Positions 17,304 through 62,984 of a DNA stretch of 64,000 nt are shown here, one piece after another. A model generated the notes under the pieces. That model had not been told where the DNA came from and searched no databases. It saw only the letters and a program-made list of their open reading frames with translations. The stretch comes from Mobula hypostoma (lineage: Eukaryota), in NCBI RefSeq assembly GCF_963921235.1, contig NC_086104.1, positions 4,092,001-4,156,000 of the forward strand. Reading direction: 5' to 3'. The translations under genes were made by a program, and so were the position numbers. Positions within the stretch are counted from its first letter, which is position 1, and each line of letters opens with the position of its first letter.

Positions 17304-17352
17304 ATGTTTGCAGCGATAATCACAACCTTGACTCTGTCCGTCTGTGCAGTGG
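17304..17352 (+). CDS. Leader (signal peptide) exon MFAAIITTLTLSVCAV(G)
   Basis: ATG with A at -3, hydrophobic 16 codons + 1 nt, donor G|GTAAGT. The 49-nt phase-1 form is typical of Ig-superfamily leaders, and it joins V1 as ...CAVG-ADIPVLIQSP. Confidence 0.75.
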
Positions 17353-48071: not shown

Positions 48072-48425
48072 GTGCAGACATTCCTGTCCTTATCCAGTCC
48101 CCGAATATACAGCGTGTCAGTGAGGGTCACACGGCGTGGTTTTGCTGTACCATCAGCAATATCAGACCAGAAGTCATTGACCTCCACTGGTATCGGAAAC
48201 TACCTGGGCAGAACATGAAGACCATAGAGTTGGTTTATACACACAGGGCAAGAAGCAGCACAGAGAAGGAATACCGTTTGAGTGAGAGGTTCCAACCCTA
48301 CAGAAACACGTCCAACAGCAGCTTCACCCTGACAGTCACAGACGTGGTGCACAGTGATTCTGCCGTCTATTACTGCAGAACGTGGGGATCCATCAACGGG
48401 AATGGCGCCCAACTCATCGTAACCA
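48072..48425 (+). CDS. V1 exon: V-set domain with joined J-like strand
   Basis: Acceptor ttctcccttacag|, donor A|GTGAGT. Encodes IQSP, B-strand Cys, WYR, RF, DSAVYYC and GNGAQLIVT. 354 nt, phase 1-1, open. Confidence 0.92.
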
Positions 48426-50641: not shown

Positions 50642-50989
50642 ATCCCGCGGATGATCCCGTCCTTGTGCAGGATCCACCAATCAGCAAGGTGCCGGAGGGT
50701 GTAACTGTCCAGCTCCACTGTGCCTTGTATAATGCCAGTGTGACTGTCACCGATGTCCAGTGGTACCACCAGCGGCCGGGGAACAAGAGCGAGTGGGCGT
50801 TGAGTCACTTTGTGAATGACTCTGTGAGCAGGTCTGGGTGTATCTCTGACCGTTTTCAGTCTTACAGGAATGTTGTGAGTAACAGTTACATTCTGACCAT
50901 CAGTAACACATCTATTAGTGACACTGCAGTGTACAACTGCAGTGTGTGGAGTTACATCTACGGAGGAGGAACACAGCTCAATGTAACTG
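50642..50989 (+). CDS. V2 exon: V-set domain with joined J-like strand
   Basis: Acceptor caacacacag|, donor G|GTAAGT. Encodes VLVQDP, LHC, WYHQRPG, DRF, DTAVYNC and YGGGTQLNVT. 348 nt, phase 1-1, open. Confidence 0.92.
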
Positions 50990-54000: not shown

Positions 54001-55049
54001 CCGATCAATTCACAGTGATACCCCAACACTCACAGTCACACAATCCTAAAATGGCCATTTCCGTTTCAGAAACTGGTTGTGAACAGACTGTTTTCTGTTC
54101 ATAACCAATCCACAGTCCACATTAGTATATTACCTCTCATACTGTGCACTGTAGTTTATTTAATGATCTGTGTGCGACTCCTCACAGGAATCTCCTCTCG
54201 ACCCTCTCCAATGTCACTCCACTCTTTAAGAAGGGAGGGAAGCAAAAGAAAGGAAATTATAGGCCAGTGAGCCTGACTTCAGTGGTTGGGAAGACGTTGG
54301 AGTCCATTATTAAGGACGAGGTTTCAGGGTACTTGGAGACACATGATAAAATAGGCCAAAGTGTGCACGGTTTCCTTGAGGGAATGTCCTGCTTGACAGA
54401 TCTGAGGAATTATTTAAGGAAATAACAGGCAGGGTAGAGAAAGGAGAATCAGTCTATATCGAGCCCTCAGATTTTCAGAAGACCTTTGACAAGGTCCACG
54501 TGAGGCTGCTTAACAAGATAAGAGTCCATGGTATTACAGGAAAGATACTAGCATAGAGTGCGAATTGACTGATTGGCACGAGGCAAAGAGTGGGAATAAA
54601 TGGAGTGACATTTACAATTTTACAGTCTTCCAGAACCATTTCAGAATCTAGAGATTCTTGAAAGATCATTACTAATGGCTCTGCAATCTCTTCAGCCACA
54701 ATGTTCAGAACCCTCGGGTGTTGACCGTGTGGCCCAGGTGACTTACCTACTTTCATACCTTTCAGTGTCGCAAGCACCTTTGCCTTCGTAATCGTTCAAG
54801 TTTATTGTGATTTGACTGTAAACATATTCTGTATACAACCACATGACACAATGTTCCTCTAGACCACAGTGCACCTTCAAAACATATATTACACACTGTG
54901 GAGATTTGTCTCCTACCCTCGGCTTTCAGTGGAATTCTGTAGACAGAGCTTGTTCTCTGCACCTCTGTGTCTCAGGAACACTTTTCAAAACCACGTTCCC
55001 CACTCAGCAACTCTGTCCCTGCCACCCCTCAAGCTGGAGTTGAAGTGAG

Positions 55050-56219
55050 GTGCAGATGTTCCTGTACTTATCCAATTCCCGAGCATACAGTGTGTCTCTG
55101 AGGGTCACACAGTATGGTTATGGTGTACCATGAGCAAAGACAGACTGGAAGACAATTACGTCTGCTGGTACGGAAGCTACCTGGGCAAGACATGCAAACA
55201 CGAGGAAATCTGCAGATGCTGGAATTTCAAGCAACACATGAAATTTGCTGGTGAACGTAGCAGGCCAGGCAGCATCCCTAGGAAGAGGTACAGTCGACGG
55301 TTTGGGCTGAGACCCTTCGTCAGGACTAACTGAAAGAAGAGCTAGTAAGAGATTTGAAAGTGGGAGGGGGAGGGGGAGACCCAAAATGATAGGAGAAGAC
55401 AGGAGGGGGAGTGATGGAGCCAGGAGCTGGACAGTTGTTTGGCAAAAGGGCTATGAGAGGATCTCACTCCTATTCTGATATGTCTATCCACGGCCTCCTC
55501 TACTGTAAAGATGAAGCCACACTCAGGTTGGAGGAACAACACATTATATTCCGTCTGGGTAGCCTCCAACCTGATGGCATGAACATCGACTTCTCAAACT
55601 TCTGCTAATGCCCCACCTTCCCCTCGTACCCCATCTGTTATTTATTTATATACATACATTCTTTATCTCTCTCTCCTTTTTCTCCCTCTGTCACTCTCCA
55701 TATACCCCTTGCCCATCCTCTGGGCTTTTACCCCCCCTCCCCCTTTTTCCTTCTCCCTGGGCCTCCTGTCCCATGATCCTCTCATATCCCTTTTGCCAAT
55801 CACCTGTCCAGCTCTTGGCTCCATCCCTCCCCCTCCTGTCTTCTCCCATCATTTCGGGTCTCTCCCTCCCCCTCCCACTTTCAAATCTCTTACTATCTCT
55901 TCTTTTAGTTAGTCCTGACAAAGGGTCTCAGCCTGAAACGTTGACTGTACCTCTTCCTAGAGATGCTGCCTGGCCTGCTGCGTTCACCAGCAACTTTTAT
56001 GTGTTGCTGGGCAGAACATGGAGTGGGTTTTAACACACAGGGCAGGAGGCAGCCCAGAGTGGGGACGGGGTTTCACTGGGAGGTTCCAGTCCTACAGAGA
56101 CACGTCGAACAGCAGCTTCACCCTGACAGTCACAGACGTGGTGCACAGTGATTCTGCCGTCTATTACTGCAGAGTGTGGGGAGACATCGGTGGGAACGGC
56201 ACCCAGCTCATCGTAACCA
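55050..56219 (+). pseudogene. V3 pseudo-exon (paralog of V1), split by a Penelope insertion
   Basis: 55050-55194 aligns to V1 48072-48217 with a 1-nt deletion after TGGTA, and 56021-56219 aligns to V1 48227-48425. The 17-nt pyrimidine tract/acceptor of V1 (48054-48070) is missing. An 812-bp insert lies at 55195-56006. Confidence 0.9.
55195..56006 (+). mobile_element. Penelope-like insertion with inverted partial pseudo-LTR, inside V3
   Basis: ORF end RLEEQHIIFRLGSLQPDGMNIDFSNF; inverted arms at about 55219-55460 and 55775-56006; 14-bp TSD ctgggcaagacatg / ctgggcagaacatg (2 mismatches); two degenerate hammerhead motifs. Confidence 0.88.
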
Positions 56220-56397
56220 GTGAGTACAAGTTCTATTTATTCAGCAGTGTGATCCTGAATGGATTTATTAGATATAGTAAACACCTTTTTCAAAGAGCTG
56301 GCACAGGAGGATGGGCTGAATGGATTCTTTCTACACTGACAGTGAGCTTCCCAGATGTTTACCCACTGATGTGATTTCCTTTCCGTTCCTCAAACAG

Positions 56398-56517
56398 AGA
56401 TGTCCCGAGCCCCATCGTACCTGGCCTGGCTCATTCTGGCTGTCGTGCTGGGAGTTCTCGCTGTCACTGGAGGCATTTTCCTCATCAGACGCAGAGCGTT
56501 TAGAAACCACCCGTCCC
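56398..56517 (+). CDS. Transmembrane exon MSRAPSYLAWLILAVVLGVLAVTGGIFLIRRRAFRNHPS
   Basis: Acceptor tttccgttcctcaaacag|, donor C|GTACGT. About 23 uncharged hydrophobic residues followed by an RRR stop-transfer. 120 nt, phase 1-1, 178 bp after V3. Confidence 0.88.
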
Positions 56518-56532
56518 GTACGTGTGACTAAA

Positions 56533-59002
56533 TGGTTCATAATGGGTGACTTCAATCTACATGTAGACTGGGTGAACCAAATTGGTAAAGGTGCTGAGGA
56601 AGAGGATTTCTTGGAATGCATGCGGGATGGTTTTTTGAACCAACATGTCGAGGAACCAACTAGAGAGCAGGCTATTCTGGACTGGGTTTTGAGCAATGAG
56701 GAAGGGTTAATTAGCGATCTTGTCGTGAGAGGCCCCTTGGGTAAGAGTGACCATAATATGGTGGAATTCTTCATTAATATGGAGAGTGACATAGCTAATT
56801 CAGAAACAAAGGTTCTGAACTTAAAGAGGGGTAACTTTGAAGGTATGAGACGTGAATTAGCTAAGATAGACTGGCAAATGACACTTAAAGGATTGACGGT
56901 GGATATGCAATGGCAAGCATTTAAAGGTTGCATGGATGAACTACAACAATTGTTCATCCCAGTTTGGCAAAAGAATAAATCAAGGAAGGTAGTGCACCTG
57001 TGGCTGACAAGAGAAATTAGGGATAGTATCAATTCCAAAGAAGTAGCATACAAATTAGCCAGAGAAAGTGGCTCACCTGAGGACTGGGAGAAATTCAGAG
57101 TTCAGCAGAGGAGGACAAAGGGCTTAATTAGGAAGGGGAAAAAAGATTATGAGAGAAAACTGGCGGGGAACATAAAAACGGACTGTAAAAGCTTTTATAG
57201 ATATGTAAAAAGGAAAAGACTGGTAAAGACAAATGTAGGTCCCCTGCAGACAGAAACAGGTGAATTGATTATGGGGACATGGCAGACCAATTGAATAATT
57301 ACATTGGTTCTGTCTTCACTAAGGAGGACATAAATAATCTTCCAGAAATAGTAAGGGACAGAAGGTCCAGTGAGATGGAGGAACTGAGTGAAATACATGT
57401 TAGTAGGGAAGTGGTGTTAGGTAAATTGAAGGGATTGAAGGCAGATAAATCCCCAGGGCCAGATGGTCTGCATCCTAGAGTGCTTAAGGAAGTAGCCCAA
57501 GAAATAGTGGATGCATTAGTGATAATTTTTCAAAACTCGTTAGATTCTGGACTAGTTCCTGAGGATTGGAGGGTGGCTAATGTAACCCCACTTTTTAAAA
57601 AAGGAGGGAGAGAGAAACCGGGGAATTATAGACCGGTTAGCCTAACGTCGGTGGTGGGGAAACTGCTGGAGTCAGTTATCAAAGCGGTGAAATGATCGGA
57701 CAAAGTCAGCATGGATTTGTGAAAGGAAAATCATGTCTGACGAATCTCATAGAATTTTTTGAGGATGTAACTAGTAGAGTGGATAGCGGAGAACCAGTGG
57801 ATGTGGTATATTTGGATTTTCAAAAGGCTTTTGACAAGGTCCCACACAGGAGATTAGTGTGCAAACTTAAAGCACACGGTATTGGGGGTAAGGTATTGGT
57901 GTGGGTGGAGAATTGGTTAGCAGACAGGAAGCAAAGAGTGGGAATAAACGGGACCTTTTCAGAATGGCAGGTGGTGACTAGTGGGGTACCGCAAGGCTCA
58001 GTGCTGGGACCCCAGTTGTTTACAATATATATTAATGACTTGGATGAGGGAATTAAATGCAGCATCTCCAAGTTTGCGGATGACACGAAGCTGGGTGGCA
58101 GTGTTAGCAGTGAGGAGGATGCTAAGAGGATGCAGGGTGACTTGGATAGGTTGGGTGAGTGGGCAAACTCATGGCAGATGGAATTTAATGTGGATAAATG
58201 TGAAGTTATCCACTTTGGTGGCAAAAATAGGAAAACAGATTATTATCTGAATGGTGGCCGATTAGGAAAAGGGGAGGTGCAACGAGACCTGGGTGTCATT
58301 ATACACCAGTCATTGAAAGTGGGCATGCAGGTACAGCAGGCGGTGAAAAAGGCGAATGGTATGCTGGCATTTATAGCGAGGGGATTCGAGTACAGGAGCA
58401 GGGAGGTACTACTGCAGTTGTACAAGGCCTTGGTGAGACCACACCTGGAGTATCGTGTGCAGTTTTGGTCCCCTAATCTGAGGAAGGACATCTTTGCCAT
58501 AGAGGGAGTACAAAGAAGGTTCACCAGATTGATTCCTGGGATGGCAGGACTTTCATATGAAGAAAGACTGGATGAACTGGGCTTGTACTCGTTGGAATTT
58601 AGAAGATTGAGGGGGGATCTGATTGAAACGTATAAGATCCTAAAGGGATTGGACAGGCTAGATGCAGGAAGATTGTTCCCGATGTTGGGGAAGTCCAGAA
58701 CGAGGGGTCACAGTTTGAGGATAGAGGGGAAGCCTTTTAGGACCGAGATTAGGAAAAACTTCTTCACACAGAGAGTGGTGAATCTGTGGAATTCTCTGCC
58801 ACAGGAAACTGTTGAGGCCAGTTCATTGGCTATGTTTAAGGGGGAGTTAGATATGGCCCTTGTGGCTACAGGGGTCAGGGGGTATGGAGGGAAGGCTGGG
58901 GCGGGGTTCTGAGTTGGATGATCAGCCATGATCATAATAAATGGCGGTGCAGGCTCGAAGGGCCGAATGGCCTACTCCTGCACCTATTTTCTATGTTTCT
59001 AT
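56533..59002 (+). mobile_element. CR1 family A, young, in the TM-Cyt1 intron
   Basis: ORFs 56320-57294 (part), 57279-57695 and 57692-58912; 25-nt deletion at an aaag microhomology near 57684; tttctatg tail. Confidence 0.93.
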
Positions 59003-59145
59003 TCTGATCCGATTGTTGTATGGGGTTATTAAAATGTGAAGGTCGGGGACTGATTGTGAAAGAGTCCGTCGTTCTGTTGTGACAACAATGTGTGACTCAC
59101 AGCTTGGAGACGGGCGTTACTGACACTTTATACTCTATTTCACAG

Positions 59146-59219
59146 ACCCACCCACAGAAACTGATCACCGGAGCTCAGGGGCAGATTATGAAAATGTTTC
59201 CGTGGCCAGGGGTGTCCCG
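59146..59219 (+). CDS. Cytoplasmic exon 1 (H)PPTETDHRSSGADYENVSVARGVP
   Basis: Acceptor ctctatttcacag|, donor G|GTGAGT. Phase 1-0, contains YENV, lies in unique sequence between CR1 copies. Confidence 0.8.
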
Positions 59220-59414
59220 GTGAGTTCTGATGCTTTTCTCAGATGAGTAGAATTGTGTGGGGATCGCTCTGGTATGTTCTTGGCTTCTTACATCAGGGAT
59301 ATTCCCCAGTGACATTGTGGTTCATCGAATATTTCTGCAATGTCTGAATGTTTTGCAAATGTATGTGGTGTAACTGTTCCTGGATATTGACCACAGACTG
59401 TACAGCTGTACAGC

Positions 59415-60630
59415 ACAGGAACGAGGGGTCACAGTTTGAGGATAAAGGGGAAGCCTTTTAGGACCGAGATTAGGAAAAACTTCTTCATACAGAGAGTGGT
59501 GAATCTGTGGAATTCTCTGCCACAGGAAACAGTTGAGGCCAGTTCATTGGCTATATTTAAGAGGGAGTTAGATATGGCCCTTGTGGCTAAAGGGATCGGC
59601 GGGTATGGAGGGAAGGCTGGTACAGGGTTCTGAGTTGGATGATCAGCCATGATCATAATAAATGGCGGTGCAGGCTGGAAGGGCAGAATGGCCTACTCCT
59701 GCACCTATTTTCTATGTTTCAATGTTTCTATGAATAGGCCCTTCTGCCCATCATGGCAGGAGGAGAGGGGGCATAAGCTAGAAGGTGATAGGTGAAGACA
59801 AGTGAGTGGGGGAGGAGGATGCAGTGAGTAGCTGAGTGGTGTCGGTGGAAAAGCTAAAAGACTGAAGACACACAGGAAAAGGTGATAGTCAAATAAGGAG
59901 GTAAGAAGAGAGCCAGGGTGGGGAATGGAAGAAAAGGAAAGGGGGATGTGAGAATTTACTGGAATATAGAGAAATCACTGTTCTAGCTATCAGTTTGGAT
60001 TCTGCCCACATGGAATATGAGGTGTTTCTCCTTCAACCTGAGAGTAGCCTCATCATTGTAGTAAAGACGGCCATGGATCAACATGTTGGAATTGGAATGG
60101 GGATTGGAATCAAAGACGAGAGGACAGAAGGCCATGGAAGAAAGGAAGCACCAGAGGGAGGTGATGGGCAGGTAAGGAGGTAAGTTGGGAAATAGGAATG
60201 TGGAATGGTGAATGAGTGGGGCCTTACAGTAAGTTCAACAAATCAATGTTCATGCCACCAGGTTGGAGGCTACCCAAATGGAATATAAGGTGTTGATCCT
60301 CCAACCTGAGTGTGGTCTCATCTTGACAGTAGAGGAGACTTCGGACTAACATGTCGGAATGGGAATGTCTTTTCCACAGATTCCCCCTTCTCCAGACCTG
60401 TAGCTCTTTCACCCCACCACTCCTCCTGGTTTCTTCTATCACCCAGTGTGTCTTTATCCTCTCCCCCCCACTATTCCTCATCTTTTTTTCCTCAGGCCTG
60501 ATGAAGGGTCTCAGCCCAAAATGTCAACTGTACTTTTTTTCTATAGATGCTGCCTGGCCTGTTGAATTCCTCCAGCATTTTGTGTCTGTTACTTGGATTT
60601 CCAGCATTTGCAGATTTTTCTCTTGTTTGT
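59415..60630. mobile_element. CR1 family A 3' fragment and Penelope pseudo-LTR pieces
   Basis: ORF 59436-59633; LEDQHLIFHLGSLQPGGMNID on the minus strand; degenerate CTGATGA motif at about 60498. Confidence 0.75.
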
Positions 60631-60656
60631 AATGATGCAGTTGTGTTCTCTTGTAG

Positions 60657-60698
60657 GGTTCAGGAGGTCACCAGGTCGATTCAAACAACACCTACATG
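60657..60698 (+). CDS. Cytoplasmic exon 2 GSGGHQVDSNNTYM (first half of ITAM)
   Basis: Acceptor gtgttctcttgtag|, donor ATG|GTAAGG. 42 nt, phase 0-0. Confidence 0.78.
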
Positions 60699-60788
60699 GT
60701 AAGGAAGGTCACCTCTGGAACATTGAAGCTTTTCCCACAGCATGAGCTGTCAAGCTGTTGTTCACACCATTTCTGTGTTCTCTACTAG

Positions 60789-60831
60789 GCTCTGCAACGT
60801 CCCACTCAGTCCATCTACGGTCATCTCCAAG
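60789..60831 (+). CDS. Cytoplasmic exon 3 ALQRPTQSIYGHLQ (second half of ITAM)
   Basis: Acceptor ttctgtgttctctactag| after a 90-nt intron, donor G|GTACGT. Completes YMAL-x7-YGHL. Confidence 0.78.
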
Positions 60832-62223
60832 GTACGTTGCAACATCTTTGGACAGGCCGGCTAAACCATATCAACTGCTGTGGAAGTGGTGAGACTGGAG
60901 AAGTCCTTTCCTTGAAGTCCCACTCACAGTCCCCGTCCTCTTCTGGATCCATCAGTAACTCCTCACGATGACTTCAGGGAAAGGACATCCATCCCTGAGC
61001 AAGTTCACTGTGTCATCTGAACCAGATCTACTGGCGAGATGAGGCAGGGTTCAATGTTCCCAGCCATTTGCACAATTGGTCCCAGGTTTGAATCTGTCCG
61101 GTACCTTGCACACTTCCCATCGGTGATCAGTGGAGTATTGAGCTGTCAACTCAACCTCATGAAAACAGTTAAATGTTAACAAAATGGCTAGATTGCCACC
61201 CAATGCACCACAAGGCATGGAGAGGAACCACAACCAGGTGTGTTCAAGACCTCGATGGCAATGGGGAAGAAGCTGTTGTTGCACCTCTATGTATGTAACT
61301 TCAGGCTCCTGTACCTGCTGCCTGAAGATGGCATTAAGTAGCGGATACGGCCCAGATGGTGGGGTTCTCTGATGGATGGCACCTTCCTGAGACATCATCC
61401 CTTGTAAATGTTCTCAATGGTGGGAAGAGAATTTCATGATGAACTGGTTCAGTCCTGGACTCTCTGTAGCCTCTTGTGTTCCTGAACACTGAAGATCCAC
61501 ACCAGAACATGGTACAACTAGGTGTGATCTGACTGATTCCCTTATGTTCCTGTGTGCTGGAGATCCCACACCAGAACATGATATGAGAGGAGCTGCCAAT
61601 GTTAAGGTAGTCCATTCTGATGGATGTAGAGAAACCATTTGTTCTCGTGGGGAATACAGAACGTGGGGCAGTTGTACAACGTCACCGTAGCCTAGCTGCT
61701 CTGGAAACCCTGGTGTTGCCATGGAGATGTACAAGCCTCTCCAACACAGGTGGGAATTCCCGGTTGGAACCGGCTGGAATTTGCTGGTTTTGGACCGTGA
61801 AGGTTGGTCAGAGCTAAAACACATCGGCCACTATCTGATCAAGTGACAGAACGGATTGGAGGGACTGAGTTGTCTTTTCACCACATTCATTTTGCATAGT
61901 CTGTTCAGGGCCCCTGATATGAGTCCAGCATCAGGACAGCAGCATTGTGTTGCTGATAGAGTCCCCCACCCATGGGTGCTTCTGCCCTCAGCACCCTGCA
62001 TCCAGCAGTAACCTGGCATGGTAGTGAGAAACATCCATGTTGTCCAGTTCATTACCCCTGGCCACAGGTCCATTCTCAGGACCAGCAGAGGTGACTTATT
62101 CCTGAGTCCCAAAACCCCGAAAGTCAGAGACTCGGGAAAACCACTCAGACAGTGCCTGCCACATAGTTTAACTCTCCCATTCTTCACCGGCTCACCTCAC
62201 ACAACTCATTGTTTGTGTTTCAG

Positions 62224-62252
62224 CCGACAATAAACCACCGTCTCGCAGCTGA
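62224..62252 (+). CDS. Terminal coding exon (A)DNKPPSRS-stop
   Basis: Strong acceptor ttgtttgtgtttcag|, phase 1 matches exon 60789-60831, TGA at 62250-62252. Short, so it is less certain; read-through of the previous exon to a stop near 60970 is an alternative. Confidence 0.6.
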
Positions 62253-62984
62253 ACCACAGCGGGAATCGGTCTGTGTGACCTCGGCTGGGGGAGGAACCCT
62301 GGATGGATTTCTGCACAGACACGCTCATCAGACATGGAAAAGTTAAAAGGCCAGACATTCTACTCATTTGACGTGCGAGACAAGAATTTCACCAAAGACA
62401 ACATTTGCGATGTTTCTGACCCTGGTCGGTGGTTGAGATCAAGAGGGTGAATGTGATCAGAGCCCAGTTGTTGGAACAAAGAACAGTACAGCACTGGACT
62501 GGCCATTCCGCCCACAATACGGTGCTGATCTTGGTGACAATTTGTACTAAATGTCCTCCTCCTGTGTATCATCCATTTCCCTCCGTTCCCTTCAATGTCA
62601 TTTCGAACATCGGACTCAGAACAATATTGCACTGGAACAGACCCTTTGGACTTGCTGTGTCAAAATAGTTAAAATTCATAATCAAATGTCCAGTGAAACT
62701 GCTTATTTCTGCCCACCCAATGTCCATATCCCTCCACTTCCTGCCAATTCATGTCTCTATCCAGGGACCTCTTGAACGTCTCTGTCATATTTGTCTCCAC
62801 CACCGCCCCGGCAGTGAATTCCAGACTCTCCCCCTCTCTGTTTCAGAAACTTGCCCCTCGTATCTCCTTTGAAATTACCCTCTGTCACTTCCAACGCCTG
62901 TCCTCTGGGACGAGACATTTCACCGGTGGGGAAAAGACACTGGTATCTATCTGTGCCCCACATAATATTATCTATATTAATATA

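Follow-up and report, generated by a model that had tools for sequence, protein, structure and literature searches.

In the classical immunoreceptor subunits CD3-zeta, FcR-gamma, CD3-epsilon, and CD79A, an ITAM (immunoreceptor tyrosine-based activation motif) goes together with an acidic residue in the transmembrane (TM) segment and with little or no ligand-binding ectodomain. NKp30 (NCR3) is an innate-type receptor with a non-rearranging VJ-type V domain and a GxGTxLxV J-like strand; the mammalian protein has one V domain and signals via CD3-zeta/FcR-gamma through a charged TM segment, and the shark NCR3 genes are reported as linked to the major histocompatibility complex (MHC). The NITR and NILT receptors of teleosts are clustered V-domain receptors, mostly with tails carrying immunoreceptor tyrosine-based inhibition motifs (ITIMs) and a few with a cytoplasmic ITAM (PMC3022915). 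The classical ITAM has the consensus D/E/N-x-x-Y-x-x-L/I-(x)6-8-Y-x-x-L/I and is described as universally spread over a pair of exons, its first half-site being cut as Yx/xL by a phase-0 intron (PMC4536121; a slash within a motif marks the intron here and below). The same split occurs in the ITAMs of CEACAM1-related receptors (human CEACAM3 and others in dog, opossum, and further mammals), which are single-chain members of the immunoglobulin superfamily with a V-type ligand domain and an ITAM of their own, need no adaptor, and are paired with genes of near-identical ectodomain whose tails carry ITIMs and switch motifs (ITSMs), the tail exons being exchanged as a block (PMC2832619). Here we analyze a window of 64,000 nucleotides (nt) from the devil ray Mobula hypostoma (NCBI RefSeq assembly GCF_963921235.1, contig NC_086104.1, forward strand, positions 4,092,001 to 4,156,000), in which positions 60657 to 60831 hold a split ITAM. 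We propose that the gene around it probably specifies a type I receptor in which a pair of germline-joined VJ domains is followed by an uncharged TM segment and by a tail that bears a YENV motif and an ITAM, that this receptor would be the self-signaling activating arm of a paired family, and that its ITAM is the same kind of two-exon module as in the classical subunits.

A preliminary description of the window, made from the letters alone, had pointed to a YxxL-x7-YxxL motif interrupted by a 90-nt intron after the Yx of its first half-site and had argued that it was no chance motif; both statements hold. Joined across an intron with canonical splice sites, the two exons (termed A and B, the sixth and seventh of the gene) read in phase 0 as NNTYM/ALQRPTQSIYGHLQ, i.e., YMAL-QRPTQSI-YGHL or NxxYxxL-x7-YxxL, with the first tyrosine codon at 60693-60695 in exon A and the second at 60816-60818 in exon B. 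The spliced sequence N-N-T-Y-M-A-L-QRPTQSI-Y-G-H-L satisfies the Reth ITAM consensus, and the 90-nt intron inside the ITAM was found in all five genomic copies of the exon pair. The two exons are thus predicted to encode a classical ITAM in a receptor tail; the split itself is an already-known ITAM hallmark.

The bare ITAM pattern is frequent (13 unspliced six-frame matches in the window), so that weight has to come from context, conservation, and intron position. We assembled an eight-exon model, in the order leader, V1, V2, TM, cytoplasmic exon 1 (cyt1, with YENV), A, B, and last exon, the broken membrane-proximal exon V3 being skipped. All its junctions are AG/GT, and its open reading frame (ORF) runs without interruption over 352 amino acids (aa). 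Compared with P0007, a Mobula hypostoma RefSeq protein (LOC134350038 isoform X2), the model shows 95% identity, and its C-terminal exons match the C terminus of that protein. The predicted TM span, SYLAWLILAVVLGVLAVTGGIFLI, has zero charged residues in a 24-residue hydrophobic stretch followed by RRR, and the ITAM sits 50 residues past this span, i.e., in the cytoplasmic tail of 72 residues. The tail of the Hemitrygon akajei RefSeq model P0002 (...RRRVFRNPSDPPTAADHQSPGADYENVSVARGVLGSGGHQVDSNNTYMALQRPTQSIYGHLQADNKPPSTS) located cyt1 and the last exon by tblastn, and four ray species have RefSeq models with the same exon joins, e.g., ...NNTYMALQRPTQSIYGHLQADNKPPS(R/T)S. A direct join of the TM exon to exon A was considered and excluded by the intermediate exon cyt1: the phase-1 donor of the TM exon would shift the frame of exon A and the ITAM would be lost. 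Three things other than the motif itself therefore set the ITAM frame: the succession of phases from TM to cyt1 to A, the intact ORF, and the RefSeq models. When the 72-aa tail was shuffled 200,000 times with its composition preserved, the ITAM pattern turned up in 45 cases (2e-4). That the motif is a chance string in a wrong frame or in noncoding DNA could be argued from the 13 chance matches and from exon A, which alone is open in all three frames; given the frame set by the TM phase chain, the ORF, and ten RefSeq models, together with the shuffle test, we consider the probability of this negligible.

Conservation from sharks to rays points the same way, and both tyrosines, both L/I positions, and the x7 spacing are kept in the orthologs that we compared. 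A tail with a YxN motif and an ITAM is present in ten RefSeq models, which come from four ray species. An alignment of eight ray tails shows no change at either Y or either L of the ITAM, the variants seen being YTAL and YGNL, or at Y-E-N of the YENV motif; exon A has the same sequence in Mobula and Hemitrygon RefSeq tails, and that of Hypanus is nearly the same, with an R and one additional G. Seven shark models retain the x7 spacing and both YxxL/I halves. The shark tails (Heterodontus, Pristiophorus, Chiloscyllium, Hemiscyllium, Rhincodon, and Scyliorhinus) follow the pattern ...TY(M/T)xLQxxxxS(I/V/T)YS(E/D)(L/I)..., with a YxN or Yxx(V) motif farther upstream. The exon boundary after Yx is set by isoforms whose sequences part immediately behind "TYM", namely P0011 in M. 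birostris and, in the sawshark Pristiophorus, P0078 versus P0080, the shark intron positions being read from such isoform breakpoints; the divergent isoforms of M. birostris and Pristiophorus read the last exon in a shifted frame (TINHRLAAEPQ and TINKQLTAEPQ). On these data, the cassette is older than the split between sharks and rays.

We then looked at how ITAMs are split in the adaptor genes of the same genome. A search with the Pfam model TCR_zetazeta gave two TM exons, and ITAM exons were read downstream of each. The CD3-zeta-like gene (C18) reads ...SAYE/RLQKKNQDAYSDL and ...DTYS/KLNTKNRSEPYGEL (splits YE/RL and YS/KL), with a terminal half GLTSATQDPYDQLQMQPL... that is probably preceded by ...LTYD/, and the FcR-gamma-like gene (C52) reads ...EGVYT/GLGEHRIDTYESLQ (split YT/GL, phase 0). 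The Pfam models of CD3 immunoglobulin (Ig) domains, PF16680 and PF16681, gave nothing above their cut-offs in the genome; candidates below threshold on C21 and C5 were empty, and the top ones led to the ITAM exons of a CD3-epsilon-like gene (C96; ...AEYA/PIKSGQREVYDKLQKR and stop, split YA/PI) and of a CD79A-like gene (C22:123.2 Mb; ...ENLYQ/GLNQDDQATYEDITRGQQSMYQDV..., split YQ/GL), both in phase 0. In all, seven ITAM splits were read in four adaptor genes, and their position and phase are identical to those of the ray receptor. The split positions that the preliminary description had named for CD3, CD79, and FcR-gamma genes are thereby borne out for the CD3-epsilon-, CD79A-, and FcR-gamma-like genes of the ray, and for the CD3-zeta-like gene in addition. 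Its further claim, that the ITAM is homologous to the antigen-receptor signaling cassette, stands as regards a real, conserved ITAM with the same split as in the adaptors; the part concerning descent is left to the intron position. Common descent with the CD3/CD79-type module, which is the usual view, would fit this position and its phase.

Alternatively, the ITAM may have arisen independently, the shared intron position being due to coincidence or convergence rather than to homology with the CD3/CD79/FcR-gamma cassette. Such an origin would agree with the fact that, outside the motif, no similarity to adaptor tails was detected, with the abundance of the bare pattern in random translation, and with the ease with which tyrosine motifs are gained and lost; some tails in the family have a pair of YxN motifs but lack an ITAM. 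We nevertheless regard it as unlikely: nucleotide position and phase are the same as in the seven splits above, the probability that one of three tail introns hits that exact nucleotide is ~1.4%, and the split has been described both as a universal trait of classical ITAMs (PMC4536121) and in the single-chain CEACAM ITAMs (PMC2832619).

As a side observation, the FcR-gamma-like gene has an apparent second split ITAM upstream (...GQSEYE/HLRHGATDVYEELKGEK, weak donor GTTAGG), which lies before the canonical ...GVYT/GLGEHRIDTYESLQ in the region of C52:1477621, ~1.6 kb downstream of the TM exon C52:1479181-1479267 (minus strand). A two-ITAM FcR-gamma has been described as unique to Xenopus laevis (PMC4536121).

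A search with V1-V2 retrieved 88 relatives from rays, skates, sawfish, electric rays, and many sharks, with two to at least four tandem VJ domains; in RefSeq they are mostly annotated "uncharacterized protein" or carry misleading automatic names. Three types of tail were distinguished. Type (i) has a YxN motif and an ITAM, always with x7 spacing, as in Heterodontus (ADYENI...STYMALQRRDQSIYSEL), Pristiophorus (ADYENV...ATYMALQQPDQSIYSEL), and Chiloscyllium (ADYENV...ATYTTLQPTDQSVYSDL), and similarly in Hemiscyllium, Rhincodon, and Scyliorhinus. Type (ii) is an ITIM/ITSM tail, KKWACFQ...NTVYATV...(L/I/V/M/C)(Y/F)YADIQF...TEYAVIKRA. Type (iii) carries a pair of YxN motifs but lacks the second half of the ITAM: in P0074 (Carcharodon), P0075 (Mustelus), and P0076 (Chiloscyllium), an exon-A-like ...VD(S/A/P)N(L/Q)IY(E/M/V) is followed by N(V/M)..., and these tails look as if exon B had been lost or replaced at the same boundary.

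Activating- and inhibitory-type tails alternate on closely similar proteins. Over residues 18 to 250, which cover the ectodomain, P0025 and P0007 agree at 93% of positions, yet P0025 has an ITIM/ITSM tail (NTVYATV, CYADI, and TEYAVI), and the Scyliorhinus proteins P0077 and P0082 share an identical TM segment and proximal tail that continue into an ITAM tail in one and an ITIM/ITSM tail in the other. The ITAM cassette occurs behind two different TM/proximal-tail contexts within the family, as the ITAM exons of Hemiscyllium, Rhincodon, and Scyliorhinus follow a TM segment and proximal tail of the inhibitory type. Searches of the genome at the DNA and protein levels found no more than five ITAM cassettes, all at C22 3.4-4.6 Mb and 97 to 99% identical; across C22 3.08-4.6 Mb, they are interspersed with at least six TM or tail exons of the ITIM type, and one ITIM-type gene ends ~12 kb before the window starts. 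The alternation of ITAM and ITIM tails on near-identical ectodomains favors modular exon exchange inside a paired-receptor family as a likely history. As judged from these sequences, the gene would be the activating arm of a clustered elasmobranch paired-receptor family with ITIM/ITSM sister genes. We found no description of this family in the literature that we searched, and it may overlap with the eight nurse-shark NCR3 subtypes of Kinlein 2021; UrIg/UrIg2 was ruled out as its identity, as those proteins consist of VJ plus C1 domains.

RefSeq isoform X1 of LOC134350038 (P0013) joins the V1-V2 of P0007 (C22:4.483-4.493 Mb) to a third V domain, a TM segment, and an ITIM/ITSM tail that map ~250 kb on, at C22:4213144-4240648 (minus strand). 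Either distant 3' cassettes are used as alternatives here or the gene model is a merged one.

The composition of the family also bears on whether the motif, though real, works as a classical activating ITAM at all; it might instead serve endocytosis as a YxxΦ signal, be an inhibitory ITAM, or act mostly through the YxN/Grb2 site. The second half-site SIYGHL also fits a loose ITIM pattern, some relatives keep YxN motifs only, and CEACAM3-type motifs have been described as endocytic or ITAM-like (PMC2832619). Against these points stand the strict x7 spacing with both YxxL/I halves kept from sharks to rays, and the dedicated ITIM/ITSM tails on sister genes, as is common in receptor pairs whose activating member is the one with the ITAM; we hold any of these other roles to be quite unlikely. 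A bolder idea concerns the origin of the cassette: with its germline VJ domains and two-exon ITAM of its own, the family might preserve or closely mimic the hypothetical one-chain antigen receptor that preceded RAG, in which case the CD3/CD79-type adaptors would be tails separated later and not the donors of the cassette. We think this very improbable.

We propose the following mechanism for the ray gene as a self-signaling activating receptor. Ligand-driven clustering would lead Src-family kinases to phosphorylate both ITAM tyrosines, and the doubly phosphorylated ITAM would then dock the tandem SH2 domains of Syk or ZAP-70, while phosphorylated YENV may recruit Grb2-type adaptors. The receptor would signal by itself, without CD3-zeta, FcR-gamma, or DAP12, and there is no sign of adaptor pairing because its TM helix lacks a charged residue. 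The ITIM/ITSM twins, presumably with the same ligands, would supply the counterbalance, and the ITAM exon pair would act as a swappable 3' module within the family.

The features of the gene are collected in the table.

Features of the putative VJ-type ITAM receptor gene in the window (positions in the window)
Feature	Position	Strand	Properties
Leader exon	17304-17352	+	MFAAIITTLTLSVCAV + G; phase 1 out; donor GTAAGT; 17/17 identical in tblastn of P0007
V1 exon	48072-48425	+	354 nt; phase 1 in and out; germline-joined VJ-type V-set; AG/GTGAGT junctions; Pfam V-set E=9e-13; 87% identical to P0007 V1
V2 exon	50642-50989	+	348 nt; phase 1 in and out; VJ-type V-set; AG/GTAAGT junctions; Pfam V-set E=1.4e-14; 97.5% identical to P0007 V2
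V3 exon, broken	55049-56219	+	frameshift and ~750-bp repeat insertion (~55250-55990); V-domain matches confined to its two halves; phase 1 in and out
TM exon	56398-56517	+	120 nt; phase 1 in and out; (E)MSRAPSYLAWLILAVVLGVLAVTGGIFLIRRRAFRNHPS + one base; donor CCC/GTACGT; 100% identical to P0007 residues 250-290
cyt1	59146-59219	+	74 nt; phase 1 in, phase 0 out; (H)PPTETDHRSSGADYENVSVARGVP; donor GTGAGT; tblastn to P0002 and P0007
YENV (YxN) motif of cyt1	59187-59198		YxN also in shark tails
ITAM exon A	60657-60698	+	42 nt; phase 0 in and out; acceptor ...ctcttgtAG; donor GTAAGG; encodes GSGGHQVDSNNTYM
Split intron	60699-60788	+	exactly 90 nt; phase 0; GT...AG; cuts the first YxxL after Yx (TAC ATG)
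ITAM exon B	60789-60831	+	43 nt; phase 0 in, phase 1 out; acceptor ...ctctactAG; donor GTACGT; ALQRPTQSIYGHLQ + g
Last coding exon	62224-62252	+	(A)DNKPPSRS; stop tga 62250-62252; acceptor tttcAG; matches ...LQADNKPPSRS in Mobula models

Some of these features suggest another explanation, in which the ITAM module is functional in the family, but the copy in the window is degenerating or already dead, with ITAM exons that are left over from a recent past. V3 has been destroyed by a frameshift and a repeat insertion, a long interspersed nuclear element (LINE) of ~2.5 kb lies in the TM-to-cyt1 intron of this copy only, and the first intron spans 30.7 kb; moreover, our protein searches returned no protein flagged as the window's own, and RNA contigs differ from the TM exon by one to three mismatches, so they may come from paralogs or another species. 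Yet skipping V3 leaves the 352-aa ORF intact with canonical sites, and P0007, a RefSeq isoform from a paralog at C22:4.485 Mb whose V3 is broken in the same way, has just this architecture and joins V2 straight to the TM exon. The LINE is intronic, and V1, V2, the TM exon, and all tail exons are open. We therefore rate the loss of this copy as a minor possibility, though one with more to be said for it than the other alternatives, and retain the reading of an intact activating receptor gene.

The LINE in the TM-to-cyt1 intron is 5'-truncated (~56537-59000, + strand, GDFN...RT, with endonuclease and reverse-transcriptase ORFs), and a second LINE 3' fragment, likewise confined to this copy, lies at 59391-59700; the distance from the TM exon to exon A is 4.1 kb here versus 1.7 to 2.9 kb in the four paralogs. 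The ~30.7-kb first intron, between leader and V1, is full of retroelement ORFs and contains no further V exon on the + strand.

For a check at the RNA level, contigs from four runs, which were only guessed to be RNA, were aligned to positions 56350 to 62330. In two contigs, X25 record 1 and X6 record 25, the match has precisely the bounds 56398-56517, and the letters beyond it are different. The X25 contig depth of 4.5 reappears at 59175, where the bin mean of 0.86 equals 4.5 x 38/200, as 42 letters on 59146-59187 would give; this pattern fits a joint 56517/59146. In run X5, cyt1 has a depth of 132.4 and a bin mean of 45.7 (46.3 expected for 70 nt), and the bin of exon B has a mean of 28.1, with 28.5 expected for 43 nt and ~54 if the 90-nt intron were kept. 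Bins 61750-62149 of the same run are zero, and the last exon is covered again at a depth of 120; it also has contig depth in run X6. The depths over cyt1, exon B, and the last exon are consistent with exon-only coverage. The ten RefSeq models from four ray species are stronger support for the exon joins than these contigs.

Several points weigh against the reading that we prefer. The RNA coverage bears on the 60698/60789 joint only indirectly, as the joints were dominated by contigs of LINEs and short interspersed nuclear elements (SINEs), and the expression is not tied to this particular copy with its dead V3 exon and intronic LINE. Runs X4, X5, and X6 also carry unspliced contigs at 56350-56538 (V3-TM intron and TM donor) and 59001-59421 (flanks of cyt1); these stem from LINE-free paralogs, as pre-mRNA or as DNA carry-over, which makes the RNA label of the runs uncertain. 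The five genomic copies are uninformative on selection because they are 97 to 99% identical even in their introns. As for function, the proposed phosphorylation, the recruitment of Syk/ZAP-70 and Grb2, and the activating outcome are expectations taken over from established ITAM biology. As for homology, a profile of TM plus tail showed no similarity to adaptor subunits beyond the motif: searched against 1.84 billion representative proteins, it returned three ray proteins of the family, one weak unrelated repeat protein, and no adaptor, and it also missed the shark ITAM tails that were later found by the V-domain search. Finally, the Pfam ITAM profile PF02189 is unmatched by the ray tails; it also misses the two CD3-zeta-like ITAMs of the genome and gives FcR-gamma 19.1 bits versus a cut-off of 22.2, and the model appears too narrow for its silence to count against the motif.

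When set beside the known systems, the predicted ray receptor shares with the CEACAM1-related ITAM receptors the single chain, the V-type ligand domain, the adaptor-free ITAM, the phase-0 intron inside the first YxxL, and the near-identical ITIM/ITSM partners with block exchange of tail exons (PMC2832619). Unlike these, it belongs to an unrelated lineage with an unrelated V domain, has an extra conserved YxN, and is part of an elasmobranch-restricted family whose ectodomains consist of two or more tandem VJ-type domains. The ray VJ domains are nearest to antibody light-chain V regions (PDB matches with E ~1e-22) and 46% identical to shark lambda chains (P0089 and P0090). With CD3-zeta, FcR-gamma, CD3-epsilon, and CD79A, as checked in this genome, the gene has in common the ITAM consensus, the x7 spacing, the two-exon coding, and the phase-0 Yx/xL split; it differs from them by its uncharged TM segment, its two VJ domains, and the absence of sequence similarity outside the motif. 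The NITR and NILT receptors resemble the ray family in being clustered V-domain receptors with mostly ITIM tails and few ITAMs (PMC3022915), but they are confined to bony fish and are set apart by their domain description (V plus V/C2 in NITR, an NKp44-like V in NILT). NKp30/NCR3 is like the ray gene in its non-rearranging VJ-type V domain, its J-like strand, and its innate character. The PDB matches of the ray V domains are saturated by antibodies, and the ray cluster shows no linkage to MHC class I, the only class searched, since class I exons were found on C12 (28-32 Mb), C13, and C15 and none on C22.

The locus would thus add a concrete case from cartilaginous fish, the oldest living group with immunity based on antibodies and T-cell receptors (TCRs), of a non-rearranging, light-chain-like VJ receptor with its own ITAM that is paired with ITIM/ITSM twins in one cluster. 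Its interest lies in the elasmobranch-wide family with tandem light-chain-like VJ domains and not in the intron, since a split ITAM is textbook knowledge. The family offers material on how activating/inhibitory pairs form by swapping blocks of tail exons, on the age of the two-exon ITAM module outside classical adaptors, and on innate, natural killer-like recognition in sharks and rays.

Large arrays of V exons that are 30 to 45% identical to the V domains of the family were seen at C2:235.9-238.0 Mb, C2:154.4-155.9 Mb, C73:8.1-9.2 Mb, and C40:18-27 Mb; they are probably Ig light-chain or TCR clusters or clusters of further VJ receptors.

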